Shown here: positions 34,101-64,000 of the stretch, piece after piece
Layout of the letters: each line of letters starts with the position of its first letter
Position numbering within the stretch: the first letter of the stretch is position 1
DNA from: Bugula neritina
Taxonomy: Eukaryota > Animalia > Bryozoa
DNA length: 64,000 nucleotides
Direction of reading: 5' to 3'
Assembly (NCBI GenBank): GCA_964035545.1
Contig: OZ037767.1
Location: 1,561,680-1,625,679 of the forward strand
Notes under the pieces: model-generated
Databases searched by the model: none
Told to the model about the DNA's origin: nothing
Seen by the model: only the letters and a program-made list of their open reading frames with translations
Made by a program: the position numbers and the translations under genes

Positions 34101-35829
34101 ATCCCCTGGTGAAGTAGGTGGAGCTAGTGGGGAAACCCCTGTTGAAGTAGGTGGAGCTTGCGGAGTTGGAGGTGAAGGCTGCCTAATAAGGTCAGCGTAT
34201 GGGTCATCGGCATCATCATCAGAGTCAAAGGGGTTGAGAAGCTCTTTCCGAGTCATTAGAGGTTTCTTTGGTGCCTGAAGGTACGAAATGATGAGTTTCA
34301 ACATATATTGTGATGCTTCACTACTAACTATGATGGCAGCCTGGTTCATCATACGACTCATGTGATATAGCAGTAGCAATGCTATCTAGACTAAGCTTTG
34401 TCGCATCAAATCGTCTAGCAACAGGGAGTAATCCCCACCTCACTCAACTGAGGCTAAAGGTGCTCAAGCTACACCCTGCAGAGCTTCCCAGACTTTCTAT
34501 GAGCACACATAGTAGGTATGGTGGACAGTTACTAGAGGGTCTGCTACTCTACAGTTAGTGGGTTTCACACTTTAACTAAAATACCACATTGTAAATACTT
34601 TATGTGAACAGACTCCAAACTCCGCCAAATACCCACACCAATGTTATTACCTTGACACGAATACCCACACCAATGTTATTACCTTGACACGAATACTCAC
34701 ACCAATGTATTACCTTGACACGAATACTCACACCAATGTATTACCTTGACACGAATACCCACACCAATGTATTACCTTGACACGAATACCCACAGCTTTC
34801 TACGACAGAATCAAACTCAAAAAGAAGTTATACATGTTGCTTAATCCACAAGCAGGTTAAGCAGAAAATATTAGCCTCAATTCTAACTTTGTCAGCTGCA
34901 GAATATCCTCCCGCAGTACCCACCTCAGGTTCCCTGGCTATGTGAAGGTCATGCAGCTGTTTCTCCGAGGAGGATCTAGACTGAGTGCTGCTGCGAGACC
35001 GGTCAGCTGAGAGCCCCTCCAGCACATCCTCCATGTAAAGCTCAGGCTCGCTACTTCCTGTGGGCGGAGAGAGCCTGGCGTCTCTGAGCAGGATAGCCTG
35101 GGAGTCCGCCACTTGCTCTACGGTCATGTGATCACTGGTGGAGCGAGTGGGCAGTATGTTGTGTATGCTGGGGCCGCGCGTGGGTGGTACGGCAGACTTT
35201 GGGGGCGTGTACTCCACGTCCCCAAACTAAGGAGTGAAAACACCGACTATACACTGACAGAAATTAGACACATTCAAGAAGAACTTTTAAATTTACAGTT
35301 GCATAAAAAGAAGACAAACTGTCTAAACATAATATTTAAAAACAGTTTAAATGTGAAATACTTGATTTCTTGTTAGTAGTGCAAACAATAGTTGAATTAG
35401 GAATTGTCCTTCCAAAGTGAAAAAGAATTGATCTACTAAATTACAGTGACCAGAGAGAGTGTGATACTCATACCCTACTACTACTCAATATAGTTTACAA
35501 GTCAAGTATATGGTGCTGAGGCTATCACTAACCACATAGGAGCTGAGACTAGGAGAGTGACCCACTGACTTCAGTTGGAGTTGTCGCCCCGTGAAATGAG
35601 TCCTGAGCTCATGCAGGTAAGTTTTTATCTGCAGCTTGTCTGGTATCTTCATGACAACCTGCAGGACATGAACTCAGACTATGCAAGAAAGTAGATATTA
35701 AGACTACTGCAACTGCTACTACTACTACTACTACTGGTACAACTGGTACTACTACTACTACTAGCACTACTAGTACTACTACTACTACCACTACTACTAC
35801 TACTACTACTACTATTAGTACTACTGCTG

Positions 35830-35865
<36 letters not shown>

Positions 35866-35884
35866 TTACTACTACTACTACTAG

Positions 35885-35960
<76 letters not shown>

Positions 35961-36001
35961 GCTACTACTACTACTAGTACTACTACTATTACTACTACTG
36001 A

Positions 36002-36067
<66 letters not shown>

Positions 36068-39000
36068 CACTACTACTCACCATGTCAACTGGCTCTATAA
36101 CTCTGGTGATTCCGAGAGAAGCCGCAGCATCAAACGCAATTTTGTTGTTAATCTTTATTTCTCGAGAGTTCAAACTTTCGAAATCTCTATAATATAACAT
36201 TGCAACAGTATAAAACTACACTACAACAATACACTACAGTACACTACTACACTACAGTACCTATATACACTACAGTACTACACTTCACTACAGTACTATA
36301 TACTATACAACACATGACACAGTAATGCCCTCACATAAGGTCTGGTCTGTAGTGATGAATGATTGCGCAAAAAGCCATTCCATTTCTCCAGGAAGTAGTG
36401 AAATTAGTGACCTTCACCCCATCGTATGCAGACGTTATCTCTTGAGCCCAGCTGAGCAAGTCAGAACTAGCGTTACTCGCTGTCATGACGACCACTGACT
36501 TCTACATATACAAACCGCTGTGCTAGACAGTATTGAACACTAATAGCAAGTGCCAGAAGTTGTAGAAAATCATATTCAACAAATATCTAGATTATTCGAG
36601 AATAACAACAATATTTATTAGTGTAATTAAATTTGCTAACTAACAGATTAGTAATATTAGACCTTAAGGCACGTAGAGAAGATGACTCCAACTGCTATAT
36701 GAAAATAGTATATATAACACACCATAGTATCAATATGAGATAGTAAGTTATTGGCATCAAAGGCAGTAAGTTACGAGAGAGAGAGAGGGGGGGGAGAGGG
36801 AGAATGAGTCATAAAACGAGAACTTTGAAAATTGTACCTTTACAGGTGTAGGAGTTACAGTGTCTGAAGGTGTAGGAGTTACTGGTGGTACGGTCATTGA
36901 TTCGTCAGGCAAATCAGAACTCTTGTGTTGGAGGAAGCTTGGTGGTGTCTCTTGCGTTGACATAGGTTTACGTGATGGTGGGGGCGTAGAAGGGGGCGTC
37001 CCTATAATGCAAGAGACATTGAAGTGTCACCCGACTCAATAAAATCTTCAAACTATTCGCATATTATTTATTCGTAAAGTATGAGTAAATTATTTGATTA
37101 AAATTAAACTTTAAAACGCTTTTTATCTAGACTTAGCCACTCCACATATAAAACTTTATTAAAAAGTCAATGCAGTATCAACAGAAGTGATAGACTGACT
37201 GAAGTAAGAAGTATAACTCTGGATAAAGTTACATCAGTGAGGAACAGGAAATAATTATTTCATAACTTATACCGGGAAAAATGTTTACAAGTTACTGCAA
37301 ACCTACCAATGTACATTTTAGCGAAAGCACTCTCACGACTACCCATTTCTTTCTCCGAGTCCACTCCATTAAACCGGGTTGTTTCCGCACTATCCACAGG
37401 CATCTCTATAGAATATATCATGGAATGAAATGAGAAACGCATCCGGGCTTCACCTTTCTAGTAAAAGCTAGACTAAGAATGTGAGGAAAGTGATGGAAAA
37501 TATTCAGAATGTGTGTACACTAATAGCTGTTCATCAACACACGTTATTCTCTCCATCATACTCATTGCTGGTGATATGCTGTATGTACCGAGAGTCCATT
37601 GCTAGTTGTATCATTTTTAGTTGTAGTCATGAATGTCACAGTAAACACATAACACTGTTAGAGCAGATATACATGTAGTAAATAATCATATAAATGAAAG
37701 AAGACTCGTGTTTCTGTAATGTAGGCAAGGGTAAGTGGATGTAATGTAGGTCAGGGTAAGTGAATGTAATGTAGGTCAGGGTAAGTGAATGTAATGTAGG
37801 TCAGGGTAAGTGGATGTAATGTAGGTCAGGGTAAGTGAATGTAAACACGTGTATGCTAATAATTATAACTAACAAGTACCCAAAAAAGAGCCCATCTGAG
37901 CTGTAAATGAGGCGAAAGAGCTTGCAGTGTTCTCCAACCCTTCAAAGTCGGCCATGTTGCCAATATCTAGGTCAGCTCCGCCCCCAGCTGAGTCACAACT
38001 CATGAGAGAAGCCACTGAAATCATGTCATCATCTCTGGAAGATATAAAACATAGTTACGAGATAACATCATGACAATATGCTCAAGAGGGAACATGCCGG
38101 AAAACTGGGGATTAAGGGTTTCAACCTGAAGAGAGTGGCTTGTAAACGAGAAACGTTTCAATTGGTGACAAAGTTTTTAAAACACAGACCCAATAAGAAA
38201 ATGAATGAATAACTTGCCACCAATAAAACCTCACCCATCTATTGCATAAATTATTTACAATTTGCTAGCGAAGAAGGGTTATTGTAGATTTTGACAGAAT
38301 TTGATTAGAAAGAGACTTAAAAGTATATTATATAATACAATTGTATTTCAAGACTAAATGAAAATACAGCAGAAAACTTGTCACATGATAAGGTCACATG
38401 GCAAGGTCACCCAGTAAGGTCATATTACAAGGGTCACATGATAAGGTCACATGATGAGGGTCACATGATAAGGTCACATGGTAAGGGTCACATAGCAAGG
38501 TCACATGATGAGGGTCACATAGCAAGGGTAAGATACAGCGCATCAACTTACGTAGCCAGTCCCTCTTTCACCAGAGTGCAGGAAATAGTGAAGGAGAGTC
38601 TAATATACTCGTACTTGTCCGGACTGCATTTTAGCTCTAAGTCTACGTGTCTAGGACTGTTGGTTATGTTGGCGTAATTCTTCATATTCATTTTCATCAT
38701 TGCAATCTGCTTCCTTTTACCACCTTGATCAACCTTAAAATAGAACAGGGTTAACCTTACAATAGAGCAGTCAGTCTTAAAATAGAACATAATAATTGTA
38801 TCACACATATGAAGCATAAGAACCGGTTCCAATATAACACACCCTCAGCCCACAACATATAAATATATAAATAATGTAAGTATATAATACCATATGATAT
38901 ATGATACCAAGTATAATGTTACAACTACAAGCTAGCAATGTCTTATCTCCATAATACTATTAGTCAATATCATTCTCACCGACTCCACATAGAAGGTCCA

Positions 39001-40034
39001 ATCTTTATCTTCAAACTCCTCCTCTCTAGGTTGGCGATACAGAGTAATAGTACTGGACACATTCTCAGGGGTGCTGAAGTCTACCCTCCCTAATGTACTG
39101 TCATTAAGTGAGGAAACCCAGCTATGCTCCTTCAACAAGTGAAACCCACAACTAACAGCAAAGTGAGAGAAGTGCTTAATAAAATATATCAGTTAAAAAC
39201 CAAGGTTCATGCAAGTGATACAAGGTTCTTACTTTGGTTCGGATGTTACGATTTCGTCGAGTCCAGTTAATACACAATTTTGACGGACGCCTGCAGTCAA
39301 CAAAGTAAAATTAAAAAGCAAACAGATGGAAACAGAATGGAGAAGTGGGAAAGAAATACTTGTTTTCCTACAGCTGAGTTTAAACCAAATTACTGAGAAA
39401 TGTCAGCCCCAATGCACTACCAGACTAGCCTATAAATTCAGAGGAATACTTAGCTGTATTTCTACTTAGTAGTATATTATATAGATCAGGGTACTCTGTA
39501 CTCCCAACCAGCTCAACACTCCATCACTTAGTGGTACCTTAGTCTAAGATATATTTCACATCACTGACTATTTAGTGTCAAACCCTATTGTAAGTAAATG
39601 GTAATTCAAATGAACGTTCTAATAACGTGAAACATAAGGGTTTAGCAAACGGGGGTGATATAAATCAGGAAATCAACTGTTAATAACAAGTATAGCTAAC
39701 AGCTAAATATTGGGCATTAGTTTTAGCTGTAAATATATACTTTGTATTTACTAAAAACTGGCAGCTGAAATAACTTAGTATAAGTCTAAACTTACATTTA
39801 AACCTATTTTACCTTTCTAGCATTAGTATATAGTATGATTGCTCAATCTTCATATCCCAATATTATAATGAAAATATAAATGCAAACATAAAACACAAAT
39901 TAAGATCCAAAATTATAACTAATAAACTACCATTTTGACTTGCAACACTTCACTGTCAAATCATGATAGGAGATGACAAAAGAGAATTTAGAGGCATGTT
40001 TGCCTCGTCTCTGTAGTCGTTTCCACACACCCAT
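22145..40034 (-). CDS. EHBP1: EH domain-binding protein 1 (NT-C2, CH, NPF, bMERB, CaaX), about 986 aa. Exons 40034-39931, 39290-39233, 39129-38980, 38733-38552, 38034-37880, 37405-37307, 37001-36838, 36501-36335, 36186-36081, 35658-35533, 35226-34888, 34274-33842, 33708-33677, 32711-32513, 32377-32232, 31933-31816, 31699-31603, 31166-31093, 30809-30695, 22241-22145
   Basis: [17 protein letters not shown] start; [11 protein letters not shown]; [13 protein letters not shown]; CH domain (LLSWAQE...[25 protein letters not shown]); LNPFD; bMERB ([15 protein letters not shown]); terminal exon [31 protein letters not shown] ending in CaaX. Phases sum to 2961 nt. Boundaries in the low-complexity middle are less certain. 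Confidence 0.93.
31212..31570. repeat. Intronic 21-bp minisatellite (CAGTAACACGTACATACTATA)
   Basis: Directly visible; fills most of EHBP1 intron 31602-31167. Confidence 0.9.
32746..33168. mobile_element. MITE (non-autonomous DNA transposon, possibly PIF/Harbinger-like) in an EHBP1 intron
   Basis: Imperfect TIRs AGCGTAGGGCCACACAACG / CGTCATGTGGCCTACGCT; subterminal inverted GAGAAAACCC / GGGTTTTCTC; CpG-rich relative to flanks. TSD not clean (TAA vs TAT). Confidence 0.7.
33895..34160 (-). repeat. Coding 33-bp repeat (66-bp higher order), PPTS(T/P)GDSP(L/Q)A about 7 copies, in EHBP1
   Basis: In frame within exon 34274-33842, just after the NPF motif. Confidence 0.9.
34628..34793. repeat. Intronic 31-32-bp minisatellite, about 5 copies
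   Basis: AATACCCACACCAATGTTATTACCTTGACACG units. Confidence 0.9.
35703..36076. repeat. (ACT/TAG)n microsatellite filling an intron of the EHBP1 CH domain
   Basis: Directly visible; starts at the GTGAGT donor (36080). Confidence 0.95.
37716..37844. repeat. 25-bp intronic minisatellite, 5 copies
   Basis: GTAATGTAGGTCAGGGTAAGTGAAT units. Confidence 0.9.
38380..38527. repeat. 12/24-bp intronic repeat (AGGTCACATGAT)
   Basis: Directly visible. Confidence 0.85.
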
Positions 40035-42568: not shown

Positions 42569-45500
42569 ATGGAGACTCGGTCAGGAAGAAAGTCTCAAAA
42601 CCAACCTCCTGGGTAATGAATTATTACTTAACTATTGAAAAATCAACAATTTCCTAAACTTGATAAAGTTTTTTTCTTTACTGAATTGTGCTTTAATGTG
42701 TTTTGTATTGTTTTAGTTCAAGCAAAAAGGAAAGGCGAAGTAGATCAATAGCAAAATCAGCTTCAAGGTCACCCACAAAATCAGCTTCAAGGTCACCCAC
42801 AAAATCAGCTTCAAGGTCACCCACAAAATCGCCTTCAAGGTCACCCTCAAAATCAACATCAAAACCACCAAAAGTGCACAATGTCTCTAATGCAGCAAAC
42901 GAAGAAATTTTTGCACAAGGCAAGTCAAAATATTAAAAACTTTTAGCAAGACAAGTTCGGCATTACTTTCAAACCCTCGTATGTTGAATATTTAATATAT
43001 TCAACCTTCATCAGTTTTATGCTTAAATATCTTTTCTTGGCACATTAGAAAGTTTTCTTGATGTAGTTATTTTCATAAACTTTTCTACAAATCACGAAGT
43101 TCGGGTTTTTCAATTGTAGCTGACAACTTTACGCCTAAGCGTCGGCGTTCTTTACATCCTGAAGCAGGTAAAAAGGGTAGATCTCAGTCTAAGATCAGAT
43201 CCAAATGATTTTTCATTCTATCACTAGTAACTAGGAGTGCTTTCAATATCTCTGTGTACATAGAGAATATGGTTGTGAGCTGTTTGGTAACATCATGAGA
43301 GAGGTTAAAAGGTCAAGTAGTCCATGACTCAACCCAGCTAGTCTATGCATAGGGATTGTGAAAGTGCTCTAAAGTTTTTTCTAATTTTGCATGTATTTAA
43401 TGTCACATGCTTTGTTGATTTACAGTTGAAATTTCGCAGTGTACAATTACTTATAAAATAGCCACTATTTTGAGTACCATGCAATGACTGTTATCCTCTG
43501 CTATCAGCTCAACTAGTTGCTCATTTCCTGGCACATCTCTAAATTCTTCCTGAATGAATCACAGTTAATCCAATTATTAGAATTAATTTTTAATTTTGCT
43601 AAAATCAATTCCAGCTGCCTTCTTGCTGATTGGCTGCCTTTCAATGTTATCTCAGAATAAACACTTACTCTCCCAGTACACTTACTCTTCTTATTCACGT
43701 GTAAGTATAACTTACTCTCTCCGTACATGTGTACACTGTTCTTGTTGCGTTTTAGCTTCTGATAGTTCCACAGACCGTAGTGAAACTGCAACCACGTCTG
43801 CAGTGTCCACGAAGGTCAAGGACTCTCCGAGCTTGGCAGCAAAGCTCTGGATGACGGCAGCAAAGCTCTGGATGACGGCTGCAAAGCTCTGGATGACGGC
43901 TGCAAAGCTGTCACCTTTAAAGCACTCCGTTTCAACATCCGTAGTCATCGTAGTCATGGCCATAGCTGTAGTTCCCATCACAATTGCCATCATCATATTT
44001 ATTCCTCAGTAAGTTCAAATTTGCGAGTGAAATTGAACTTTAAGTTTGAATAGAATTATCATTGCCTCATGGAAGTCCATCAAAGATTGTTATTAGATTT
44101 GATCAATTGTTAAACTCAATAGCATAAGTTTCATGGCTAATTTTGTTTACTTGACATATACTAAACTGTGGCAAGATTGTTGGTTATTTTAGACCCATGT
44201 TTACAGGTAGCCCCCTCTCCCCACTATCTATGGGTGGAGATTTGCTATACTATTTCTATGTAATAGAGTAGATACAGTTATATAGTATGTCATGGTGACA
44301 TGGGGTATTATGATTATGCTGAAGTATTTCTTTTATATAGAGAAGATTTATAATTTATATTGACATAGTGTATTTGTTGGTGAATGCCTTATTATATAAA
44401 GAACTGTACTAGTCTCCGTCTGTTCTAGGTTGGCCTATCCAGCACCAAAGGAAATCACTCAACCGAAACACTCAATAGAAGAAATCAAACGCTTGAGTGA
44501 AAGTTTCTTTCCTCCCCAATCTAATAGATTTTGGAAAATAATAACGTCAAGTGTAAATAGTTTCTCTTTTGTTAATATGTAGCTGGGTGGCTTTTGTGTC
44601 TTTATTTATTTTAGTCTAAGTTCTACTTGATCCCAACCTTTTCATTTAACTCTCAAATATTTGAATAACTGAGGGTTCTGTAAACATATATACATGCAGT
44701 ATATACAAATTATATATATGCAGTACATGCAGTTTACATGTTCTGTAAACATGCAGTATATACAAGGCATGTCACTGTTTGTACACTAGAACATTGTTTA
44801 ACTCTAAATATTAGATATCCTAATGCTTTATCTTATTGGCATAGTATGTATAGTAGATAAAGTAAGTACAATAAGTGCAGTAAGTATAGTAAGTACAGTA
44901 GTTTTTATATAATAAGTATAGTAGGTATAGTAAGTATAGCATTGATAGTGAGTATAATATAGTAAGTATAGTACTTATAGTATAGTATTTTTGGTATAGT
45001 ATTAAAGTATGTATAGTACGTATAGCATGTATAGTGTGTATAGCATGTATAGTGTGTATAGCATGTATAGTATGTATAGTGTGTATAGTACGTATAGTAG
45101 GTATAGTGTGTATAGTACGTATAGCATGTATAGTGTGTATAGCATGTATAGTGTGTATAGCATGTATAGTGTGTATAGTACGTATAGTAGGTATAGTGTG
45201 TATAGTATGTATAGTACGTATAGTAGGTATGGTGTGTATAGTACGTATAGTAGGTATAGTGTGTATAGTACGTATAGTATGTATGACTTTAGGTTCGCAG
45301 TGCCACAAATCCAAAAGGAAGTGGTCGGCCATCTTGTATTTTGTTTACAACCGACTCTGAAAGTATGGCCACAGCTCAAGGTGTAAATTCTCTTGCAGAC
45401 GTAATTGAGAATATATTTGACTCTGGCAAGGCTCTTAGTATATACGGTAAGTAATAAGTAAGTATATACTGTAAGTAATAAGTAAGTATATACTGTAAGT

Positions 45501-46354
45501 AATAAGTAAGTATATACAGTAAGTCCTCCCACTGTGAAATTAAGACATTATGAATTAAATGGTGTCCCAAGTTTAAAGGAAGTCTTCTTGCCATGTTGCT
45601 GCAGGGGCGGATCATAGAGGGGGTGGTCACAGAACTGCTGTAGATGAGAAGCTATCTGAGTGGTTTGGTGGTGGAAACAGAGTGGCCGTGTTACATGATA
45701 TAGACATGTTCACTGTGGAGACGGCAAAGTTATTTTACAAGTTAGTTCTAATAGGAATGTCTTGTTTTGGGAGTTGTGTTCTAGCAGGGTGGGGGCTCTA
45801 GATAAATGTGGTGCCTTGGCTATATCGACTAAATCACAATGAAAGGTTTCAAATAGTCGAGCATTTTTATTGAAACAACTTCAATTTACTAGTCAATAAT
45901 TTGATAGATTAAATTCCTTCTAACCATAGACTGAGCTCTACATTGGAAGAGGTACTAAAAGTAGCATAACTCCCCAGTGTTTATAAGTCATGTTAGAGTT
46001 TAGAGCACTCATCTTTGTTTTACTGAGTAGTAGTAGAACTAATGGCAGCAGCAGTAGTAGTAGTAGTTACCATGCTGCTATAACTATGCTGTTGTCACTA
46101 TGCTGTTGTTACTAAGCTGCTGTCACATGTATTTTTGCAGATTTTGTGATGATAATCCCGACCCGGTATTCCCCGGTAGCGTGCTCCTTCTCACTGTCAG
46201 CTATAAGCCTGGCTATACTCTGGACAAATACTGGATAGACAATGTACTTAGAGATCATTGGTCTAATGAGGAAGACGTGGTGGGCCCATTGCTCTCTAGA
46301 GTTGGTAACAGTGTTAATGTGATAAAGAGTGCTAATGCTACTGAAACTCAGTGA
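42569..46354 (+). CDS. TOR1AIP1-like: Torsin-1A-interacting protein (LAP1/LULL1 family) paralogue A, about 391 aa. Exons 42569-42612, 42717-42919, 43120-43167, 43756-44008, 44429-44552, 45293-45446, 45605-45740, 46141-46354
   Basis: Basic N-terminus, one TM helix (VVIVVMAIAVVPITIAIIIFI), then FPPQSNRFW, RPSCILF, VAVLHDID, LFYKFCDDN, VLLLTV and GPLLSRV, matching the LAP1/LULL1 luminal motifs FPGQ..LW, FYKYCDHEN, LVLTV and GLWSRI as recalled. Phases sum to 1176 nt; requires one GC-AG intron. Confidence 0.78.
44990..45285. repeat. 9/18-bp intronic repeat (GTATAGCAT/GTATAGTGT)
   Basis: Directly visible; source of five spurious ORFs. Confidence 0.9.
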
Positions 46355-47988
46355 CTTGTTAATGGGAGTAGATAGTTTAGCCAAATCTTGTAAATTAATA
46401 TAACATGATAGTAATAATATAATGATGTAGTTATGTAATAATGTAATGAGTTAACAAAAGTGTCATAGCACTGCTTGAGTAAATAGTTTTTTTAAAATTT
46501 ATTATTTTTGTAATCGAAGCAATTCTGCCCATCTTCCTTAGGGAATAAGGTTCAATTTGAAGGTCATAAGTATAAATAAAATGATATCTGGTATTTTTGT
46601 TGGATTTTCATGTTATACAAATAATTATAGTACAAGAAGCTGTATTTTTAAAAACATTTGTTAACTTTTTGAAAATGATTTGAAAAATTGCAGTGACTTT
46701 GATATGATTTGTTTAATTATCTTTCCCTTATCTTTGAAATTGTAGCTTCACTTGCCAACCTGTACGCTGCATGATTCTCTTCTATATAATGCATATTATT
46801 ATTATTGATATATTGAAGATATTATTCCTATTCTGTAAATAATATACATTACTCTTTTACTGCCCATTCTCCTACACAAACAATGAACACCTGATTTTAC
46901 CATCAAAATGTTTTATCTTTTTAGAACTACTAGAAATTATTATGTTTACTGTTTTTCTACAATTTTTACGTTTGTTTCTCTTAAATTTAGTTGACTATTC
47001 TAAATAAATGCATAAACTGGATGAAAATTGAGCTGCATTTCTCCGTTACTCTGCTTATATCGCCTCTCAGTGTGTAGTTGAAAGCTTTTGAAGATGTTCA
47101 GTTTTATTGAGCCACCTTTGATCAACCTAATAAATGTTGAGATAGTTAACTAGTTTGTGGTCTAATACGTGTTGAACAGCACCCAACCCGTAATCTGCTA
47201 ATTATCTTGTGGTTAAAGTAAGTTAAGTATACAAGGTTAAGTAAATGTTAAGTATACAATCGGAGTGATAAGAGTTAATAATTCACGCCGCTCGACTGTG
47301 GGCTGATAGGTGTGATGTTGATAGTTTACACGGCAGTGCACTCCCTTTGCTCGCAGTCTATGCAGTAAGTAGCCTTGCCTAGACACAACTTCAACTCACT
47401 CTAAGGTAAGTTCTATATTCTAGTCTTTCTAGATAATTAGTAGCGCCTCTTAGTCTTATTATTATATTTGTTGTCTATTTATGATGCTGCATAGTTACCG
47501 AAGTAAATAATTAAAATAATTCAGTGTATTGGTTAGCACGCTGGGCATGTGCGCGGTCTATAATGTGCTGTTCATTTAGTAGCAGTAGTGGAGATATTGA
47601 GATAGCCTAAGCTCTTTAATTTTCTTTACAAATTTTGGTTTGGTGCCATTACGGCGCCTACCTCGCTTTACTTCCTGTATCACAATGGTATTTTGCAAAT
47701 TTAAACTGCACAGAGCTGCTAGCAACTGTTGAACAAATTAGCATTACTCCTCAGTTATTAGAACCCACATTGAATTAATAAATAAAAGTTGATAATTGTT
47801 GGCCTATACATAGTAGAGTGGTATCTGATAGCGTAAGCGTGCCTGTATGCTGCTACTACTAGCGCTGTAGTAGTACTGGTACAAGCTCTAGTAGTACTAC
47901 TACTAGTCAAGTAAATTCAATGATATTATATATTCTTACTTTAACATAAATGTCGTAGCTCTTTTTCATGGCAGACTGAAGGTCAAAA

Positions 47989-50900
47989 ATGGAAGCTGCT
48001 GACACTACAACTAGCAGTAGTAGCATTAGTAGTGCTGGCATTGTACCCTCCATCAGTAGTACTGACAGTGACATTGTAGCTACTAGTACTAGTAATACTC
48101 ATACTGACACTGCAACCACTAGCAATACTGACACTGCAACAACTAGCAATACTGACACTGCAACTGTGAGTTGTACTGACACTACAACTACTAGCAATAC
48201 TGACACTGTAACCGTGAGTTGTACTGACACTCCAACTACTCTTAATACTGACCCTGCAGCTACTAGTAGTACTGACACTACAACTGCTAGTAGTACTGAT
48301 ACTGCAACTATGAGTAGCACTGACACTGCAACTACTGGTAGTACTGATACTACAACTATTAGCAATGATAAAATTACTCCAGCAACTGGTGCTACCACTG
48401 TTTCTAATGCTGCCACTGCTGGTGATAATGGTGACACTACTGGTGATAATGGTGACACTACTGGTGATAATGCTGCCACTACTGGTGATAATGATGACAC
48501 TGCTGGTGCTAATGGTGACACTACTGGTGCTAATGGTGACACTACTGGTGATAATGCTGCCACTACTGGTGATAATGGTGACACTACTGGTGATAATGGT
48601 GACACTACTGGTGATAATGGTGACACTACTGGTGCTAATGGTGACACTACTGGTGCTAATGGTGACACTACTGGTGATAATGCTGCCACTACTGGTGATA
48701 ATGGTGACACTACTGGTGATAATGCTGACACTGCTGGTGATAATGGTGACACTACTGGTGATAATGCTGCCACTGCTGGTGATACCGCTAATGGTGATGC
48801 TGCTCCCGCAACTAATGCTGCCGCTGATACTAGTGATACCACAGCTGGTGATAATGCTGGTGCTGCTCGCGCAGCGAATGCTGATGCTGAACACAGACCT
48901 CGGGATGAGAGATACAAGATGTGGATATTATTGGCAGCACTCATTTTATTATGCGCCTACACCGCCCCCACCCTCTTTATGTATGTTGAGCAATTGCCAA
49001 ATAATTTTTTCAAAATGTTTATTATGACGTCGAGCATTGTTTGAGAAAAATCTGTAAGATTACATTGCTGGTGTTGCTATTTCTACATATACAGTTCATG
49101 TCCAGATGTGCATTTCATACTCTGTAATGGTTCCATTTAGGAGAGCTGACAAAGTTGCATGTGGCGCATTCGATAATCCACCCAGAGAAATACGTCCAAC
49201 CTTAGAAAAATCTTTACCTCCTCAAAGCAAAAAATTCTGGAACACTTTAAAAGCCACGGTTTGTTGTTTATATGTATAAATTATTATTATTTATTTATCT
49301 ATATAAATTATTGTTATTTGTTTATTTATATAAATTATTGTTATTTGTTTATCTATATAAATTATTATTATTTGATATATTGTAGTAACTTGTGGGTTAT
49401 TGAATGCAATCAGGCAGAGAACATAACTCCTTGTAAGAGAAGAGATAAGAGAGTGTAGAGTAGTGTGTGCTGTAAGCCTTTATTAGTGTAGTTGATCCTT
49501 CCAGTCTGAGCTCCTGTCTTCAACTGACTGGAGCTCAGAATGTGCCTCCTTTTATAGTATTTGAACAAAAGGATTATAGAACCTTCGACCGACAGCTGGC
49601 CGAAGTTCGGCAGGGCGCGCCGTTATTCGAAATGTTGTAAACCGACACTCGGCATGTTGGCAGCTGCAAGCTGAACCTCGGTCAACTGTCGGTTTACATG
49701 AAGGAACAAAATTGACCCCAACCAAGTGCATGGGTATTATTCAAAGAATAAAGGGGGAGGGAAAATACTAGTCACTGGATAAATAGTATACTATCGTTAA
49801 GATATTAGTTGATGTTCTTGAAGGGGCCTGTAAAGGGGGGTAACTCTGATATTTACCACAATATCTGCTAACTTCCTGATAAATAGCGCATGTCTTTCTC
49901 GAAGAAAGGATCACTATCAACATGTATGTTATGCCTTAAGGTGTAGAAATATCGTGCAGACGTACAAATCTAGAATTAAATTGATCACTCAGTGTTCAGT
50001 TCCCTTGCAGTTGAGGCAGATGTCAAGGACTGATAGGCCATCTTGTGTTGTTCTTGCTGCTGACACAAGCTCTGTCTATGATAAAGATGCTATGATAGAT
50101 GCCGTGGAAAAGATATCCAACGCAATGTCGTGTGTATCATGTAACTCTGAACACTCGCTGGTGCTTAAAGGTTGGCTACAATTTACTAGTTTCAGTGTAA
50201 CTTACTTTCTACTATGCAGTATTTATAAATACACTAACCAACCAAATTCTTTCTATAGATTGTATAGGTTATGTGTTGAAAATAAAGCAGTTTTGTGTGT
50301 TACCTATAATCAATTACTTAGCACTTATTCTCTATTACTTATTGCTCCTTTTTATGGTTGATTGTTACTTGTTGTTTATTTTATTTAACTTATCGTTTCT
50401 TATTTATCACTTGCTGCTTTTTATGTTCTACCCATATATCTAAAATCGCCACACTACAGTTGTAATTAGCAGACAAATATATGATATTCAGTTTTATTTC
50501 AAAGAGACTATCTTTTTGAAAACTTTGCAAGCTTATCGTCAGAGTTTCATTGGCAACTCAATAGACTCCATATACTGCTGGACTTTCATCCCTAAAGATA
50601 AACGTAACTGAAAAACCGATCCCCTTTTACTTTAACAGGGGGGGATTTTGTGGCTGATAAGCAAGGACTCGATGAAAGGTTATCTCACTGGTTTAGTGGT
50701 GGAAACAGAGTGGTTGTCATACACGACATAGATAAGCTCAACGTGGATACAGCAAAGTTGTTTTATAAGTAAATCTTATCACTTTCATTGTGTAACTATA
50801 ACTAGATTAGGTTTTCCTGTGAATTATATCAAACTGTACTTTGAACTTGTCAGTAAAACCTAAAACTTTATTCAATTCTGCTACTTTTTCATAAGGGAAA

Positions 50901-51405
50901 AGCTCAATAAATTGAGTTTCACCAGTTGATAGTTATTTGAGCTCATCAAAAGTTATACATAATATTATTTATTCAGTTTAATGTGGTAGTTATCTGCACA
51001 TTTCTTCTCTGTGGTAGTTGTCTACTCTTTATAAATTTAATAGTTGAAATGTCCTTAAAATGTTGTGTTCTGGATTTATCTACTCTTGCAATATTTTTTT
51101 CATAAACTTACTGTTGTAGAGTGTGTGAAGACAACCCCAACCCTCAGTATCCCCACACAATATTATTCCTGACTGTAAACCAAAACCCTGACGATGAAAT
51201 TGATCAATACTGGTTGGGGAAAGTGCTTAGAGATCATTGGTCTGATGAGGAAGATGTTATTGGCCCATTGCTCTCTAGAGTTGGCAATTATGTGACTACA
51301 ATAAAGTTGCCAGAGGAATCTACATCCTATTGTTACTATCTCATAGTTGCATTTATTATTCTTATTATTATTTTTGTGAGTTTCGTTTTATATAAGATGA
51401 GATGA
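47989..51405 (+). CDS. TOR1AIP-like: Torsin-1A-interacting protein (LAP1/LULL1 family) paralogue B, about 561 aa. Exons 47989-48980, 49141-49258, 50011-50170, 50639-50768, 51120-51405
   Basis: Thr/Asp/Gly repeat N-terminus, TM (WILLAALILLCAYTAPTLF), LPPQSKKFW, RPSCVVL, WFSGGNRVVVIHDID, LFYKVCEDN, GPLLSRV, then a second hydrophobic helix. Same four intron positions and phases (2,0,1,2) as paralogue A; phases sum to 1686 nt. Probable 5' UTR exon ends at the AAG/GTAAG donor near 47405. Confidence 0.78.
48060..48800 (+). repeat. Coding minisatellites: 24-bp (TDTATTSN-type) then 21-bp (TTGDNGD/TTGDNAA/TTGANGD)
   Basis: In frame in the first coding exon of paralogue B. Confidence 0.9.
49381..49860 (-). 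mobile_element. Solo LTR (480 bp, Gypsy-like), antisense within an intron of paralogue B
   Basis: TG...CA termini with inverted ends TGTAGTAA / TTACCACA (7 of 8 match); 4-bp TSD ATAT at 49377-49380 and 49861-49864. On the minus strand TATAAAA (near 49555) precedes AATAAA (near 49482). No internal coding sequence. Confidence 0.75.
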
Positions 51406-52849: not shown

Positions 52850-53602
52850 ATGAAGTGCCTGGTAACTCTCTTCCTCATAGCAATGATCTGTGCTGAAAGC
52901 AATGCTCAGCCCTTCTCTATGTTCGGCAGAGGAAATACAGCCGTAAACTCAGTACGACTCAATCCTGAGCAGGTAAACTCTGTACATGTTGATATATCAT
53001 ATACAACCATTCAGTTAGGTGGAAGATAATATAGAGTGCTTGTAGAAGTTGTCTTCACACAAGGGATCACCTCAAACTAGTTACTTATTATTATTGGAAA
53101 CTCCCTAAATGTGCTCACACTATAGAAATACAATTAATCATAATTTCAAGCTATAATATTTCATTTGTTTATTGAATGTATAGAAGAAAACAAATATTGA
53201 ATAATAGTAATAATGTGTATAATTATCTCAAGATCTGCATCTTTAATATCGCCCATCCATCAAATGAATGAAGTCTTCAACACACACTCCCAAGTATTCA
53301 TAACTAAGCAGTATGCTAACCTTCTCAATGAATATTTTTCATGAAGTGTCCAATAGGAAGCCATGGTTTTTGCATCAGCCAATGAGAATTGCCTTTATTT
53401 TAGCTAGACCTGCTGATTTGCTAGATTCATGTTATTGATGCACTATAAAATGCTGTAGGCAGCAGAAAGATGCATCCAGATGGGTATTGAGTACAACTTC
53501 AGCACCCAACAGCTGCTTGACTGCATTAATGCACAAGAACTACCTGGGTCTGATACATTCAATGTGTACAGAAGATGGGGGCCACCCAGACTGCCCGCAT
53601 GA
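52850..53602 (+). CDS. Small secreted protein, candidate neuropeptide precursor, 88 aa; exons 52850-52972 and 53459-53602
   Basis: MKCLVTLFLIAMICAESNA/QPFSMFGRGNTAVNSVRLNPEQ + AAERCIQMGIEYNFSTQQLLDCINAQELPGSDTFNVYRRWGPPRLPA*. Signal peptide, phase-0 GT-AG intron, acceptor at 52846 with an upstream donor at 52251, AATAAA at 53811. Confidence 0.75.
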
Positions 53603-53845: not shown

Positions 53846-54096
53846 GAGAGAAATTCACAAAAGACAAGACATTAGCTGTTGCATAAGCAAATTACTTTCT
53901 GAATGAAATAACAAAGAATCTTATTATATGCACAATCATTCAACAAACTGACAATAAATTAGATCAACTATTGCACAAGTAACTAATTACAAGCTTCCTC
54001 AAAAGTTGCCATCTAGTTTTCCCCTCGACTCAGAAACTTGGGAGATGGCAACTCCGATTTTATTAGTAAGTACGCGTGTAGCCAGCATTTGTTGAC

Positions 54097-57000
54097 TCAG
54101 AGCTTCCAAATAGACTTAGGCTTAGTTCTCTCAAATAAGAACTGACAAACTCTGTCGGCCAGCCACGCCCCGATGAAGTCAACAAATAGCACCATGACCA
54201 GTACGTTACGGAACTGCAAATACACACAAGAACTGAGTCTATTGTGTTGAAAGAGATGAGGCTATTTCCTTTTTTACTATACAACAATAGCTTCGGCTAA
54301 ACTATGCAATTGTAGCAAACTGAGTAAGTAGAGGGAGTAAGTGCGAGGAGTAAGTACGAAGAGTAAGTACACCAAGATAACTTACCTCACTAGGAAAAGG
54401 AACCAGTTCAATATACTCAGCTAGCTCAGGCATCAACCCACTGGCCAGAGAGAATATAACAAAGGTAGAGACTCCTATACTATAAAACAGAAGCTTATTT
54501 TCTCTCAAGCTTTGCATGAATGGCCGTCCCTGTAAGCAGAATAAACCGAATCACACACACAGTAGACACCAAGATATGCCAGTTTCCTGTTACGGCTTAT
54601 ATTACCTTATAGTTGACTGCTACAGTGGACACCTGCAGGCTCATAGATATTAAGTACATGGTTACCTTATAGTTAACTGCTACAGTGGACACCTGCAGGC
54701 TCATAGATATTAGGTACATGGTTACCTTATAGTTGACTGCTACAGTGGACACCTGCAGGCTCATAGATATTAGGTACATGGTTGTATTCAACAGGTCTGG
54801 TGAAAACTTCTTTTCCAAGTCTACAAATTTTTCTTCTCTAAAACACATGAGAGTAAAGATAATTTTACTAAAAACTGAAGTAAGATAGTACATATAAAAC
54901 ATATAAAATGGTCCACAAAAAAGAGCCTAGAAATTGATATGATTATTTATGTTGTACAAATTGAACCAATGTTGATACTTAAAATCACGAAAGTTACAAT
55001 TGACTAACAGTAAAATCCCTTTCATTTCACGACATTGGGACCAAACCCACCTCACCACAACTCACCTGGGAGAAGCCTACCTCACCACTACACTCACCTA
55101 GGAGGCATCCTCGTCTGAGCCTCATTTGCGAGGTATATAAGACTAGCAAAGTGGATGGAGAACTGGAGCACCACTGAGCATATAGTATAGAGATTAAATA
55201 TGTTGGTTAAGGGCCTCTTCTCTGACAGGGTCTTCAATGGCTACAAATTGAACAGTAAACTTCTGCTTCTACATTGCTTCACACGAGTTATGAGTACGTA
55301 ATTCATTGTTACTAGCATCATTACCTCTTATAGAGACTTAAGCTTAAAATCACAACTAAACCAGGTGGCTGTAGATAATGCAGCATGTACAGCAGAGATA
55401 GAGCTACGTAAGATACATGTATTCATCAGTGTACATTTACCTGTGACCTAGTTATAAACAGGAAACAGCCGGCCAGCAAGAGACCTTGAACTGTAGCCTG
55501 TGTATCACTAAACTTGATGCCATCCAGAAAGAGCACACTTTGAGTATAGGCTAAGATGAGAGCATTGAGAGCCAGTATTTTAAACATCTGTAGAGTTGTG
55601 ACAAGAGTGCATCTGCCTTGCTTGATGATGTGACACACTAGAATATATTATTATAGAGGTAAATAGAGAGAGTCTATAGTAAACACATAGAGGTAAATGA
55701 AGAGTATATAGTAAACATATAGAGATCAAGGAAGCAGGTACCTGACTGTATGGTAGAGTACTTAGAGGTAAATGGAGAAGCTATGCTAGCATCTCCCAGT
55801 TTAACCACAGTACTTTCTGCCTCTTCCATTTCCTTCATCATTTTCTCCATCTTTTCCATCCTCTGTCAGACACAAGTGTATACATATGTTACCATGGGAA
55901 CTGACGCGTTACCATAGCAACCATAAGTGACATTTAGCAACATTTCACCAGGTAAACCCCAACACATTCATACAACTAAATGAGGCTTACATTAGCTGAG
56001 TTTCAATATGTTGAAAAGTGGAGACTATAAAACAGATATTTATAATGTGCGGTTACTTAGAATACAAAGTAAGTATATACACTACCTGGTAAGTATATAG
56101 ACTACCTGGTAAGTATATAGACTACCTGGTAAGTATATACACTACCTGGTAAGTATATACACTACCTGGTAAGTATAAACACTACCTGGTAAGTATATAC
56201 ACTACCTGGTAAGTATATAGACTACCTGGTAAGTATATACACTACCTGGTAAGTATATACACTACCTGGTAAGTATATACACTAGCTGGTAAGTATAAAC
56301 ACTACCTGGTAAGTATATACACTACCTGGTAAGTATATAGACTACCTGGTAAGTATATAGACTACCTGGTAAGTATATACACTACCTGGTAAGTATATAC
56401 ACTACATGGTAAGTATAAAAACTACCTGGTAAGTATATACACTACCTGGTAAGTATATACACTACCTGGTAAGTATATATAAAACCTGTACAGTAGTAAA
56501 CACACACACGTACATTAGCAAGCTGATTTGTCTCCCCAGCTCTGGCAGCGGCAGCTCGTCGACTCGGTGCCCGGACAGCAGGTGATGGTTTGATAGCCTT
56601 AGCTGTAGCGCCGTTAGCAGAGAGGGTGTCAGTGGAGGACTCCCCATCCTTAGGAGCCTTTGGTTTGTGGACATGAGGCTTCTTCATAGCGGAGAGTAAG
56701 GCCACACCCACGTGGGCGTGTTTGAGAGCCGCGACGTCATTGGTTCCATCTCCACACATGAGTGTAGTGTAGCCCAGTTCCTGCGTAGAAAGGAGATCTG
56801 ACTCTATCAGATATTTAATGTGAATATTCAAAGCTTTGCATCTATTCACACGGAGATATTAACATCTGCTTTACAAAACAACCCACCATCCAGGGAACAA
56901 GACAACCAAATTTATAATATAGCAAAAAGGAATCTAGCTTTCCCAGCACACAGTAACGTGATAGCTGTTTCATATTTGAATATACGTTTAATATATAAAT

Positions 57001-60000
57001 CACACTGAGTTTACGCTGTCCAAGAGATGAGCTACCTTCTATTGAACGATGAACTTATAAAGATTCCATAATTCATTCCAAATAATATATCAATTGAACA
57101 GCATCACTGCTTAGTATAAGTATGCATATGTATAGCTTATAATATACATATATAAGGTGATATCTACAGCTTATAATATACAGATATAAGGTGATATCTA
57201 CAGCTTATAATATACAGATATAAGGTGATATCTACAGCTTATAATATACAGATATAAGGTGATATCTACAGCTTATAATATACAGATATAAGGTGATATC
57301 TACAGCTTATAATATACATATATAAGGTGATATCTACAGCTTATAATATACAGATATAAGGTGATATCTACAGCTTATAATATACAGATATAAGGTGATA
57401 TCTACAGCTTATAATATAGAGCTATAAAGTGATATATATATAGCTGCAGAACGCACCTTCATAGTGGTGATAACCAACTCCTTCTGTTTAGGTGTAACTC
57501 TGGCAAATACTGCAGTGCAAGGGATAAGTTTCTTAGCCAGTCCGAGGGATTGCAGGTGAGTTAGACCCTGTAACATATGCATATGATATGATATATATGA
57601 TAGTCATAGAGTAATATATACACATTATATGCATATATATGATAGTCATAGAGTAATATATACACACTACATGCATACATATGATAATCATAGAGTAATA
57701 TATACACATTATATGCATATATATGATAGTCATAGAGTAATATATACACATTATATGCATATATATGATAGTCATAGAGTAATATATACACACTACATGC
57801 ATATATATGATAATCATAGAGTAATATATACACATTATATGCATATATATGATAGTCATAGAGTAATATATACACATTATATGCATATATATGATAGTCA
57901 TAGAGTAATATATACACACTACATGCATATATATGATAATCATAGAGTAATATATACACACTACATGCATATATATGATAGTCATAGAGTAATATATACA
58001 CACTACATGCATATATATGATAGTCATAGAGTAATATATACACACTACATGTATACATATGATAATCATAGAGTAATATATACACACTACATGCATACAT
58101 ATGATAGTCATACTGGGTGAACTCAAGTTTCAGTGCAGTTGTTCACTTAATGACTTTACCATAAACCTAGCCTCAGGGAATCACATTGCACCTACGGGGC
58201 GTGCATAATTCATCACAATACGCAGTCAAGGAGAAGAGGATTCAAAAGCTAATCACAATGAAATAGTTCACTGTTCAACCTATACAGTCTATGTTAGAAC
58301 AGAAGTGGACAAACAGACACAATCCACATGATAACCTTGAGATACAACTACTGCATGAAGTAACATGTCTTCTTATAAAACACAGCAGACGTAATAGCAC
58401 CACAAACCTCTCCAGTGATACATAAATCATAGGACTTGAGTTTAGACAGAGTTTCCGTAGAGACATCAAACACCTCTGCACCATCTACCGACTCCCACCT
58501 CCAGCCCTGAGACTTGGAAGGTTCAGTGGTGATGAGGGTGTGGGGTTTCACCGTCATCTTCAACTCCTTCGCTATATGACAGGCCGTCAGCGGGTTATCA
58601 CCGGTTATCATGCATGTCTACAGAGCATAGCAAACAGTAAATAGAATTGATATATCAATACATAGGACTGATATATCAATAAATAGGACTAATATACCAA
58701 TAAATAGGACTAATATACCAATAAATAGGACTGATATACCAATACATAGAACTGATATATCAATACATAGCACCACTGATCATGACCAGCTCTGACACTC
58801 ACATAATGAGAACTCTCTTGTATCTCCTTTATGGCGTGTTTAGAGTCGGGTTTCAGCGGACAGGAGAGGGCAATAAACCCAGCAAACATGAGGTCCTTCT
58901 CCACATCACCTCTACTCAACTCCCTTATCTGCTCAGAGAAGACGAGTCATTTAGTTTTAAACTATTTACAGCTAGAAATATGTGAGCTGCACTTACTTTT
59001 TTATCTTATCTGTTATATCTTTGCTATTGATGTAAGATAAACAAAATATGTAAAATCATTCAAATTTCAAATATTTTAACCTTTTTTATTTATATAGAAT
59101 AAATGAAATAAAAAACGAAACATTTTTTATAGCAGAGTTGACTTAATAAATGAAATAGTATAAAACCTTCAGAGAGATTGCTATATTAACACCAACTCTA
59201 TCAACACAAAAGACAAAGCACTTCTCTCACACTCAGTAGAGTACAAGGTACACACACCTGGGAGTGAGCGAGACGCCCCAGTGGTTTGTATCCCAGGGCT
59301 ATAACTCTGGCACCGCGTCTTGCTAGAGACAGGTAAGTCTTTTCATAGTACGTAGGCAACTCCTTGAACTACAAGTAAACACAATAAGTCTATCCTTGAA
59401 CTACACAAAGTATTTGAATAAAAATAATTTATTGGACTAGATTATAAAATAAACACAATAAACTTCAGACACATAAGAAACTCACTTGAAGCTCTAAATA
59501 AAGCCCTAGGCCCTAGACTAAACAAAGCCCTAGGCCCTAGACTATACAAAGCCCTAGGTCCTAGACTATATAAAGCCCTAGGTCCTAGACTATATAAAGC
59601 CCTAGGCCCTAGACTATATAAAGCCCTAGGCCCTAGACTATATAAAGCCCTAGGCCCTAGACTAAACAAAGCCCTAGGCCCTAGACTATACAAAGCCCTA
59701 GGCGCTAGACTATACAAAGCCCTAGGCCCTAGACTAAATAAAGCCCTAGACCCTAGACTATATAAAGCCCTAGGCCCTAGACTGAGAGACTCACCATGTG
59801 TTGGAGGGTCTCCGGAGCCCCCTTAACAGTCACCAGAATCTCATTCTCAGTAGTCCCCGGGGGCTGGTACCCCGCCACTACACTCATCCTCTTCAGGGCG
59901 CTGGAGAAGTGAAATCTGTGGAAGATCTTCATAGCGTTTGCCTTGACCTTCGTAGACTTGTTGGGACACACCCCATCATCTGAAACGATTGTATCAGTGG

Positions 60001-63000: not shown

Positions 63001-63814
63001 CTGTCAGACGCTAAGTCTAAGTTATCGTTGGCTGCAACGTATTCAGTTAACAGGAAGCATTAGTAACTCAAACTGAATTTATGTTTTCATATCTGTTATA
63101 AATTCAACTAAGATACTTTAGTGAATTCAATAGTATATATTTACATGTCGCATAAGACAATAAAACACAAACTTGACTGCAATTTTAAACACCAAGCAGC
63201 GTGGAGAGCACAAATCCTATTTTAAATAAATCTTAAAAACCCTCCTGCCTTTTTTTATTGTTTTGAAGTTGAAAAAATTCCTTTCCATATATTATATAGT
63301 AGCAGTATTTATATAAACTCTTACCACAAGCACATAGCTTTTGCTCTAAGCAACGTGTGTTTATATTAAAATATAGCTGAATCATGTTCTAACCAGTTAA
63401 TAGAAACTTCTGAGTTATTTGGGAGTTGCCCACTCAGCATAACGCTTACTCTGTATATAACACAGCTGTTACAGCTGCACATCTACATATTAACATATAA
63501 ACAGCAGAAACAAACTTCTACCTTCCAAATCTTCAACAGACTCCTTCATCACTGGAACGGATTCCCCGGTGAGCATAGACTCGTCTGCTATACACGAACC
63601 TCTCACCAGCAGCACGTCACACGGCACCGGTCTGTCATCCTTACTCCGACCTGCAGGGTAAAGTTCAGCTAGATGTCAGCGCCCGCTCACAATGACTCAT
63701 TCGACAGCAGAAGTAACAACAACTTAGAAGAAAGGAGAACTAACCTATGGAGACCAGGTCACCCGGCAGAAGGTCAATTGTGTTTATAGACATCCACTTC
63801 CTGTTCCTGTATGC
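54097..63814 (-). CDS. ATP13A1: P5A-ATPase ATP13A1/Spf1 (ER TM-helix dislocase), 3' part; 5' end beyond the window. Exons 63814-63745, 63650-63522, 63031-62924, 62449-62267, 61999-61862, 61598-61478, 60720-60560, 59979-59795, 59368-59258, 58928-58803, 58617-58408, 57567-57457, 56780-56514, 55862-55742, 55637-55441, 55240-55098, 54837-54726, 54529-54386, 54213-54097
   Basis: [10 protein letters not shown]5A signature [96 protein letters not shown]; terminal exon ends ...KPKSIWKL*. Confidence 0.96.
54602..54783 (-). repeat. 60-bp triplication spanning an ATP13A1 exon 3' end and its donor
   Basis: Three near-identical units encoding [20 protein letters not shown], with possible exon ends at 54726, 54666 and 54606. 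Confidence 0.95.
56069..56479. repeat. 20-bp intronic minisatellite, about 20 copies (CTACCTGGTAAGTATATACA)
   Basis: Directly visible. Confidence 0.95.
57134..57435. repeat. 34-bp intronic minisatellite, 8-9 copies
   Basis: CAGCTTATAATATACAGATATAAGGTGATATCTA units. Confidence 0.93.
57592..58112. repeat. 39-bp intronic minisatellite, about 13 copies
   Basis: ATGATAGTCATAGAGTAATATATACACACTACATGCATATAT-type units. Confidence 0.93.
59495..59783. repeat. 24-bp intronic minisatellite, about 12 copies (AAAGCCCTAGGCCCTAGACTATAT)
   Basis: Directly visible; starts about 10 nt after the donor at 59794. Confidence 0.93.
60395..60545. repeat. 15-bp AT-rich intronic repeat (TAATAATATAATGTA)
   Basis: Directly visible. 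Confidence 0.9.
60795..60915. repeat. 23-bp intronic minisatellite, about 5 copies (GTGTTACCAGGTAATACTGGTAT)
   Basis: Directly visible. Confidence 0.85.
61583..61666 (-). repeat. 30-bp triplication spanning an ATP13A1 acceptor and exon 5' end
   Basis: TACTTTAG/GTGTTTACTGYACTGA three times; possible exon starts at 61658, 61628 and 61598. Confidence 0.92.
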
Positions 63815-64000
63815 CTGCAGCAGATGTGAAACTCTCCGGAATTATTATTACATGTATATTATTAATAACTATAAGTATGATAATTCCTTTATAATATATT
63901 ACTTGGATTATACAGTATATTGGTTAGACGTTCTATATCTGTGACAAAGCAATGATGACTAATAAGAGACCAACACTGCAGTTACTTGTTGTAGTATACT

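Follow-up and report, generated by a model that had tools for sequence, protein, structure and literature searches.

Why vertebrates need the torsin activator LULL1 throughout the endoplasmic reticulum (ER) is unclear, and flies manage with one activator at the nuclear envelope. A stretch of 64,000 nucleotides from the bryozoan Bugula neritina (GenBank assembly GCA_964035545.1, contig OZ037767.1; hereafter the window, to which all positions refer unless a locus is named) raises the question of whether a pair of activators for these two compartments has arisen independently in an invertebrate. The window contains two adjacent genes, A and B, which an initial annotation, made from the sequence alone, had read as a tandem pair of torsin activators that recreated the split between LAP1 and LULL1. 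After the analyses described here, we regard it as more probable than not that A and B encode two working torsin cofactors, that they are partial tandem duplicates, and that A would act at the nuclear envelope and B across the ER.

Both genes were rebuilt exon by exon from the coordinates of the window. They are arranged head to tail on the + strand between 42569 and 51405, and all exons are open. Gene A has 8 exons (42569-46354, 391 amino acids (aa)) and ends in a normal stop codon, which is followed by a spacer of 1.6 kb and then by gene B with its 5 coding exons (47989-51405, 561 aa). The introns are GT-AG, with the second intron of A (GC-AG) as the sole exception. Four introns lie past the membrane segment in identical phases in the two genes (2, 0, 1, 2), and the motif GPLLSRV is present in both last exons, so that the tandem pair with four common intron positions proposed in the initial annotation was borne out by the rebuilt exons. 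The luminal exons of A and B are, in gene order, 34, 24, 57, and 53% identical.

A protein search was performed with the last exons of A and B as queries. The closest full-length matches were the B. neritina genes EB796_003432 and EB796_003433 from a draft genome (GCA_010799875.2), followed by a protein of Watersipora subatra. The two B. neritina genes are neighbours on one contig, and UniRef names their products as torsin-1A-interacting protein activator-domain proteins. They are direct orthologues of A and B, alike in order and in neighbouring genes and 89-96% identical in the luminal exons; they differ from the window in the repeat counts and in the frame of the tail of B. The window and the draft contig are about 85% identical, introns and neighbouring genes included. 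B. neritina is a species complex (PMC11480708), and the two genomes probably represent different members of it. Exact look-ups of the open reading frames (ORFs) of the window found them absent from the database, and a word search with the first ORF of B, which detects only 0.55-1.75x lengths, gave no match.

The initial annotation had assigned both genes to the LAP1 family and had proposed a search with the LAP1 C-terminal profile. Tests of the whole domain (Pfam, PDB, and AlphaFold) were made with the B. neritina orthologue proteins, and the window genes were handled exon by exon. The Pfam profile LAP1_C (PF05609) matched the A orthologue with 43.1 bits and the B orthologue with 27.4 bits, the curated cutoff being 26.8. 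Single window exons matched LAP1_C below the cutoff (expect values (E) in Table 1) and matched no other family, and a PDB sequence search with single window exons gave no match. In the PDB sequence search with the luminal domains, A retrieved LULL1 (8e-9) and LAP1 (2e-8), and B retrieved LAP1 (2e-4). The AlphaFold models of both orthologues (predicted local distance difference test (pLDDT) 81) contained an AAA+-like alpha/beta domain without the C-terminal small domain. Foldseek placed LAP1/LULL1 (4tvs, 5j1s_B) at the top ranks, with E of 1.6e-11 for A and 3.1e-10 for B and template modelling (TM) scores of 0.71-0.76, four to five orders ahead of Clp ATPases.

Individual residues were also compared. 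The arginine of PLLSR is invariant in an alignment of 13 rows and is located, in the models, in the final helix, which precedes the final strand. The profile places PLLSR on GLWSR of LULL1, which is the position of LAP1 R563 and LULL1 R449 (numbering checked against the residues named in PMC4999309); this stretch alone scores weakly. No P-loop (Walker A) follows strand 1, and the Walker B position reads hhhhHD, not hhhhDE. The most conserved cysteine, C496 of LAP1, is kept, as YK-F/V-C aligns with YKYC of both human proteins. Absence of Walker A, a non-canonical Walker B, and the conserved Cys are traits of the activator family (PMC4358337). Between A and B, conservation is highest in the last helix, which faces the torsin. 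Thus, with Pfam, the PDB sequence matches, and two AlphaFold models that match LAP1/LULL1 first, the family assignment stands: A and B belong to the activator-domain family and are not orthologues of LAP1 or LULL1.

Comparison of the luminal exons of the window with those of the B. neritina draft yielded ratios of nonsynonymous to synonymous substitutions (dN/dS) of 0.26 for A (p 8e-5) and 0.35 for B (p 0.007). Judged by these ratios, both genes are under purifying selection, and both look functional. Exon 1 of B is open from the same ATG in the two genomes. Indels between them were in frame in 6 of 6 cases in exon 1 of B and in 9 of 25 cases in introns (p 0.007), a value to be read with the caveat that the repeat units are multiples of three and that two of the six indels are changes in repeat number. 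The deposited GenBank model of B is without the repeats, starts at an ATG that is absent from the window, and ends in exon 2 of the small gene downstream, and we consider this fusion model to be wrong. At the residue that follows the arginine finger (46301-46303 in A, 51280-51282 in B), A and B of the window both have Val, and their draft orthologues both have Ile. A single Val/Ile site that groups by genome and not by orthologue is too little to claim gene conversion between A and B; it could reflect a short conversion or a parallel change.

The N-terminal heads of the two proteins are of opposite character. The head of A is rich in Lys, Arg, and Ser, with a 24-nt repeat in exon 2 and 11 RS/SR pairs. 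S-P-x-K/R sites were found five times in exon 2 of A, three times in A of the B. neritina draft, once in Watersipora, and never in B. The first 310 aa of B contain 52 acidic and 6 basic residues as well as 88 Thr, resulting in an isoelectric point (pI) of 4.05. These counts agree with the basic and acidic heads described in the initial annotation. The motif PKRRR, which had been listed there as resembling a nuclear localization signal, is present in exon 3 of A, but it reads PKARR in the B. neritina orthologue and was dropped as a signal for lack of conservation. A further repeat of 21 nt in A (43835-43909, 3.6 copies) encodes a heptapeptide with Trp and Met before the membrane segment and is a single copy in the B. 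neritina draft.

The N-termini had been described as unrelated. However, a stretch of exon 1 of B was identical in 31 of 50 bases, and in the same reading frame, to the junction of intron 3 and exon 4 of A (43748-43797). This was the best non-self match within the window on either strand (the next best reached 26). Among 2000 shuffles of the bases none attained it, and among 2000 shuffles of the codons 29 did. Exon 1 of B therefore descends from the membrane exon of A: it is that exon, extended by about 30 codons into the old intron and with its linker expanded by repeats. An intronic satellite as the source of the repeat of B is disfavoured. The single protein of Watersipora (XP_067942485) combines a basic head (pI 11.9) with an acidic linker (pI 4.2), and its exon layout and downstream neighbour are like those of Bugula.

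The luminal domains of A and B are 43-50% identical. Identities to human LAP1 and LULL1, which were compared only as PDB matches, amount to 22 and 23% for A and to 20 and 19% for B, with no preference of A for LAP1 or of B for LULL1. Because A and B are so much closer to each other than to either human paralogue, independence of the Bugula duplication from the vertebrate one is well supported, in agreement with the separate invertebrate duplication claimed initially. The trees contained bryozoan-type sequences only; further word searches gave no matches beyond these and no vertebrate, mollusc, or annelid sequence for a tree. In the last-exon tree, A and B were joined with support of 99/99, and the approximately unbiased (AU) test rejected a grouping of A with Watersipora (p 0.004). 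Over all exons, 23 derived sites were shared by A and B, and 12 and 10 supported the alternatives (p 0.01). The trees of the penultimate exon and of the luminal exons L1 and L2 were unresolved or distorted by long branches. The duplication most likely took place on the line to Bugula, as far as these sites and trees indicate.

Watersipora (41 kb seen) and the locus L009 (17 kb seen) have one copy each, directly before the same small gene, and no head-less second copy was found at the Watersipora locus within the 41 kb seen. At least four paralogues (P0006, P0007, P0009, and P0014) were found in the same marine metagenome samples. They share intron sequence and fall outside the Bugula pair. Two of them have a hydrophobic C-terminal tail and two do not; a comparison of 157 bases of the last exon showed 93% identity between P0006 and P0014, whose ends nevertheless differ. 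The four are likely to come from one species, probably a bryozoan. If so, the activator family would expand repeatedly in bryozoans, with two copies being one case of several. Copy number seems to vary freely among bryozoans.

In the mechanism that we propose, the ancestral single gene would have had a short basic head, followed by an acidic Ser/Thr linker in front of the membrane segment, an arrangement that Watersipora still shows. The duplicated block would have begun inside the third intron of A, and because of this starting point B would never have received the three basic exons. Translation of B would then have come to start at a new codon, about 30 codons upstream of the former acceptor, its acidic linker would have been enlarged by tandem repeats, and A would have kept and enlarged the basic head, in an order of events that we infer. 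Both proteins would be anchored in the membrane of the ER and nuclear envelope, with the nucleotide-free AAA+-like domain in the lumen, where it would dock on torsin and supply the arginine finger for ATP hydrolysis, an activity expected from the family. The basic, RS- and S-P-x-K-rich head of A may bind chromatin or lamina and so retain the protein at the inner nuclear membrane, and mitotic phosphorylation may release it. The RS domain of the lamin B receptor resembles the head of A, which suggests release driven by CDK1 in mitosis. B, whose head is polyanionic and carries no retention signal, would spread through the ER. A LAP1-like and a LULL1-like activator would thus have been obtained by the simplest route, the loss of a retention head. 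We infer nuclear retention for A, and none for B, from the mammalian extraluminal domains, which decide between inner nuclear membrane and ER (PMC5350507), from the chromatin-binding region of LAP1 (PMC7773337), and from the location of the single fly activator at the nuclear envelope (PMC8408595). This division of compartments, argued from charge, is plausible and, in our estimate, just on the likely side.

Several findings weigh against two cofactors that are distinguished by location. LULL1 R276, the partner of TorsinA E303 (PMC4999309), aligns to an Ile in A, and the vertebrate disulfide (C424-C582 / C310-C468) is absent from A and B. A has neither of these cysteines; B lacks the one at the helix-1 position, and the Cys in its tail is Phe in the draft. 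The gene at locus L009 (3519-7976, +) keeps both the helix-1 and the C-terminal Cys, and a related single-copy gene at L012 (524-811) keeps the C-terminal one; because L009 keeps both, the vertebrate-type disulfide would have been lost on the way to Bugula (also Watersipora). B has retained a cysteine ahead of the first helix and another within helix 1; both are shared with Watersipora and L009 and were lost in A, and together they possibly form a disulfide. The luminal domains of A and B differ at more than half of their residues as well as in their cysteine sets, a difference overlooked in the initial annotation, and partner specificity may matter as much as location. The hydrophobic tail of B could alter its topology. 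Concerning the phylogeny, the sister relationship anticipated in the initial annotation was recovered from the last exon, and the signal stems from the two 3' exons (15 shared sites vs 4 vs 3), whereas the 5' pair of luminal exons gives none (8, 8, 7), and in the L1 tree A falls with Watersipora. A less likely alternative is an earlier duplication within bryozoans, with gene conversion at the 3' end. Lastly, metagenome scans for transcripts or further loci gave nothing.

The tail of B was analysed together with the membrane topology. The hydrophobic segment before the luminal domain reached a KD19 of 3.25 in A and 2.06 in B, no N-terminal signal peptide was visible by eye, and the conserved C-terminal sequon of A fits a luminal C-terminus. 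B of the window has a second hydrophobic segment at its C-terminus (KD19 3.0), which had been missed initially. Read-through into local non-coding DNA gives such a hydrophobic tail in 1.7% of starts. P0007, P0014, and P0011 end in similar hydrophobic segments; in the B. neritina draft and in an independent JGI fragment, the tail of B is in another frame, with a KD19 of 1.4. A second membrane pass in B is a lead, suggested by hydropathy, and not a result. It is conceivable, if doubtful, that bryozoans re-derived an ER-wide activator by head loss and that some copies (B of the window, two of the four paralogues of another species, and one further species) gained a C-terminal membrane segment and became double-anchored or inverted. 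A double-anchored or inverted activator has not been described for the activator family. If true, this would point to repeated selection for a non-nuclear torsin activator and would offer a natural experiment on the purpose of LULL1.

Alternatively, and in our view somewhat improbably, both genes may encode torsin cofactors that were kept for luminal or tissue specialisation, that is, for different torsin paralogues, partners, or life stages, with the head of B as a loosely constrained spacer and the likeness to LULL1 incidental. The 5' luminal exons are just 24-34% identical, the two cysteines kept by B and the other bryozoan-type copies were lost by A, the repeats of B vary in number and sequence between the Bugula genomes (310 vs about 250 aa), at least four paralogues exist in another probable bryozoan, and the luminal domains of mammalian LAP1 and LULL1, about 60% identical in humans, are not interchangeable (PMC5350507). 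However, the head of B is poor in basic residues and devoid of S/T-P-x-K/R in both genomes, so that precisely the expected nuclear-retention element is removed, and the torsin-facing last helix is where A and B have been conserved best.

We consider it unlikely that B is made without its repeat head, starting near Met311 with a cleaved signal peptide, the C-terminal tail serving as an inverted anchor or the protein being soluble in the lumen. The long ORF begins at a conserved ATG, its frame has been kept through six indels, and the head descends in frame from a coding exon of A. It is true that Met311 is conserved directly before a hydrophobic stretch that ends in small residues like a signal peptide, that the C-terminal hydrophobic segment of the window copy is strong and recurs in the three other copies named above, and that the repeat is open in several frames. 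The GenBank model, too, is without the repeats, but its first ATG is not conserved in the window and it is fused to the next gene, and the frame of the tail is not that of the B. neritina draft.

Very unlikely is a single transcription unit in which exon 3 of A is spliced to the relic acceptor, which would place two luminal domains under one basic head in nuclear-envelope products. The relic contains an AG (about 48079-48080) whose phase, 1, is that of the acceptor of exon 4 of A, and an AG in that phase is present in the draft as well, but the pyrimidine tract is poor, A has its normal stop and the spacer, and B starts from a conserved ATG of its own and is preceded by a conserved splice donor near 47406 that suggests its own exon in the 5' untranslated region. 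We regard it as equally improbable that B is a decaying duplicate without function: the tail is frameshifted between the genomes, the repeats are unstable, and dN/dS is above that of A, yet dN/dS is significantly low (0.35) and the splice sites, the arginine finger, and the fold have all been kept despite more than 50% divergence from A. True orthology of A and B with LAP1 and LULL1, through a duplication before the protostome-deuterostome split, would explain the tandem arrangement and the basic and non-basic heads of both pairs but is practically untenable, given that A and B resemble each other twice as closely as they resemble the human proteins and show no cross preference, that Watersipora, L009, and Drosophila have single copies, and that the junction relic is still recognisable at the DNA level.

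The reading of A and B as a nuclear-envelope and an ER activator likens them to vertebrate LAP1 (TOR1AIP1) and LULL1 (TOR1AIP2), which are adjacent duplicates with a luminal AAA+ activator domain, an arginine finger, and divergent extraluminal N-termini (PMC2171781, PMC4358337, PMC4999309). The Bugula pair differs in a lower luminal identity (43-50% vs about 60%), in the lack of the C424-C582 disulfide and of LULL1 R276, and in its four introns, whereas the membrane segment and luminal domain of mammalian LAP1 are on one exon (PMC2171781). In contrast to LULL1, B has a head of 300 aa of tandem repeats that derives from the linker of A, and possibly a second membrane segment. Drosophila has a single torsin activator, dLap1/Torip (CG14103), at the nuclear envelope (PMC8408595). 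The initial annotation had called the pair the best candidate for an undescribed system, which goes too far: UniRef already names the domain in both orthologues, and the mechanism is an ordinary partial tandem duplication. Literature searches yielded no paper on pairs of torsin activators in bryozoans or other invertebrates, nor one that discusses EB796_003432/EB796_003433, and these tandem torsin-activator genes, independent of the vertebrate pair and traceable in their origin, have apparently gone undiscussed. Such a pair suggests that the two-compartment arrangement is easily reached and can be maintained by selection. In addition, the bryozoan heads can be grafted onto mammalian luminal domains to probe the rules of retention, and the public gene model of B is corrected. 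The reach of these results is limited, as neither the family nor its mechanism is new, tandem duplicates often diverge in disordered ends, and few genetic tools are available for the organism. The features of both genes are compiled in Table 1.

Table 1. Exons and further features of genes A and B in the window, and related metagenome fragments
Feature	Position	Strand	Remarks
Gene A exon 1, start codon and basic head	42569-42612	+	matches start of B. neritina A orthologue
Gene A exon 2, K/R/S-rich	42717-42919	+	24-nt repeat x4.6 (42752-42862); five S-P-x-K/R sites; GC donor
Gene A exon 3	43120-43167	+	TPKRRR (B. neritina draft: PKARR)
Gene A exon 4, Ser/Thr linker	43756-44008	+	21-nt repeat x3.6; predicted transmembrane segment ~43941-44006
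Gene A luminal exon L1	44429-44552	+	
Gene A luminal exon L2	45293-45446	+	strand 1 and helix 1; no Walker A
Gene A luminal exon L3	45605-45740	+	degenerate Walker B position; Pfam LAP1_C E 0.042
Gene A last exon	46141-46354	+	conserved Cys; arginine-finger codon 46298-46300; C-terminal N-x-T sequon; stop
Gene B first coding exon	47989-48980	+	acidic Thr/Asp/Gly/Asn repeats, then predicted transmembrane segment ~48922-48978
Relic of A intron-3/exon-4 junction in B exon 1	48072-48121	+	same frame
Gene B exon 1 repeats	48101-48366; 48405-48784	+	24-nt x11; 21-nt x18
Gene B luminal exon L1	49141-49258	+	Cys common to Watersipora and L009, lost in A
Gene B luminal exon L2	50011-50170	+	helix-1 Cys common to other bryozoan-type copies, lost in A
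Gene B luminal exon L3	50639-50768	+	Pfam LAP1_C E 0.099
Gene B last exon	51120-51405	+	arginine-finger codon 51277-51279; hydrophobic C-terminal segment ~51337-51393; stop
Metagenome paralogue fragments			L002-L007, L013-L023

Upstream of gene B, a conserved and GC-richer stretch (47260-47407, +) ends at the conserved splice donor and is likely to be the promoter and non-coding first exon of this gene. Downstream of B, a small gene of two exons (52850-52973 and about 53460-53602, +) encodes a protein of about 90 aa with a signal peptide and the ending RWGPPR; its exon 1 has no Pfam match. It is kept in sequence and position in B. neritina, in Watersipora (L008 38250-38399), and at L009 (10288-10404). 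An EHBP1-like gene with N-terminal C2, CH, and bMERB domains (about 27000-40031, -) lies head to head with gene A, the starts being about 2.5 kb apart. Further away, the window contains a tRNA dimethylallyltransferase with IPPT domain and zinc finger (4300-6095, +) and, both named from motifs only, an Otx-like homeobox exon (9421-10104, -) and a P5A ATPase resembling ATP13A1 (54000-64000, -).

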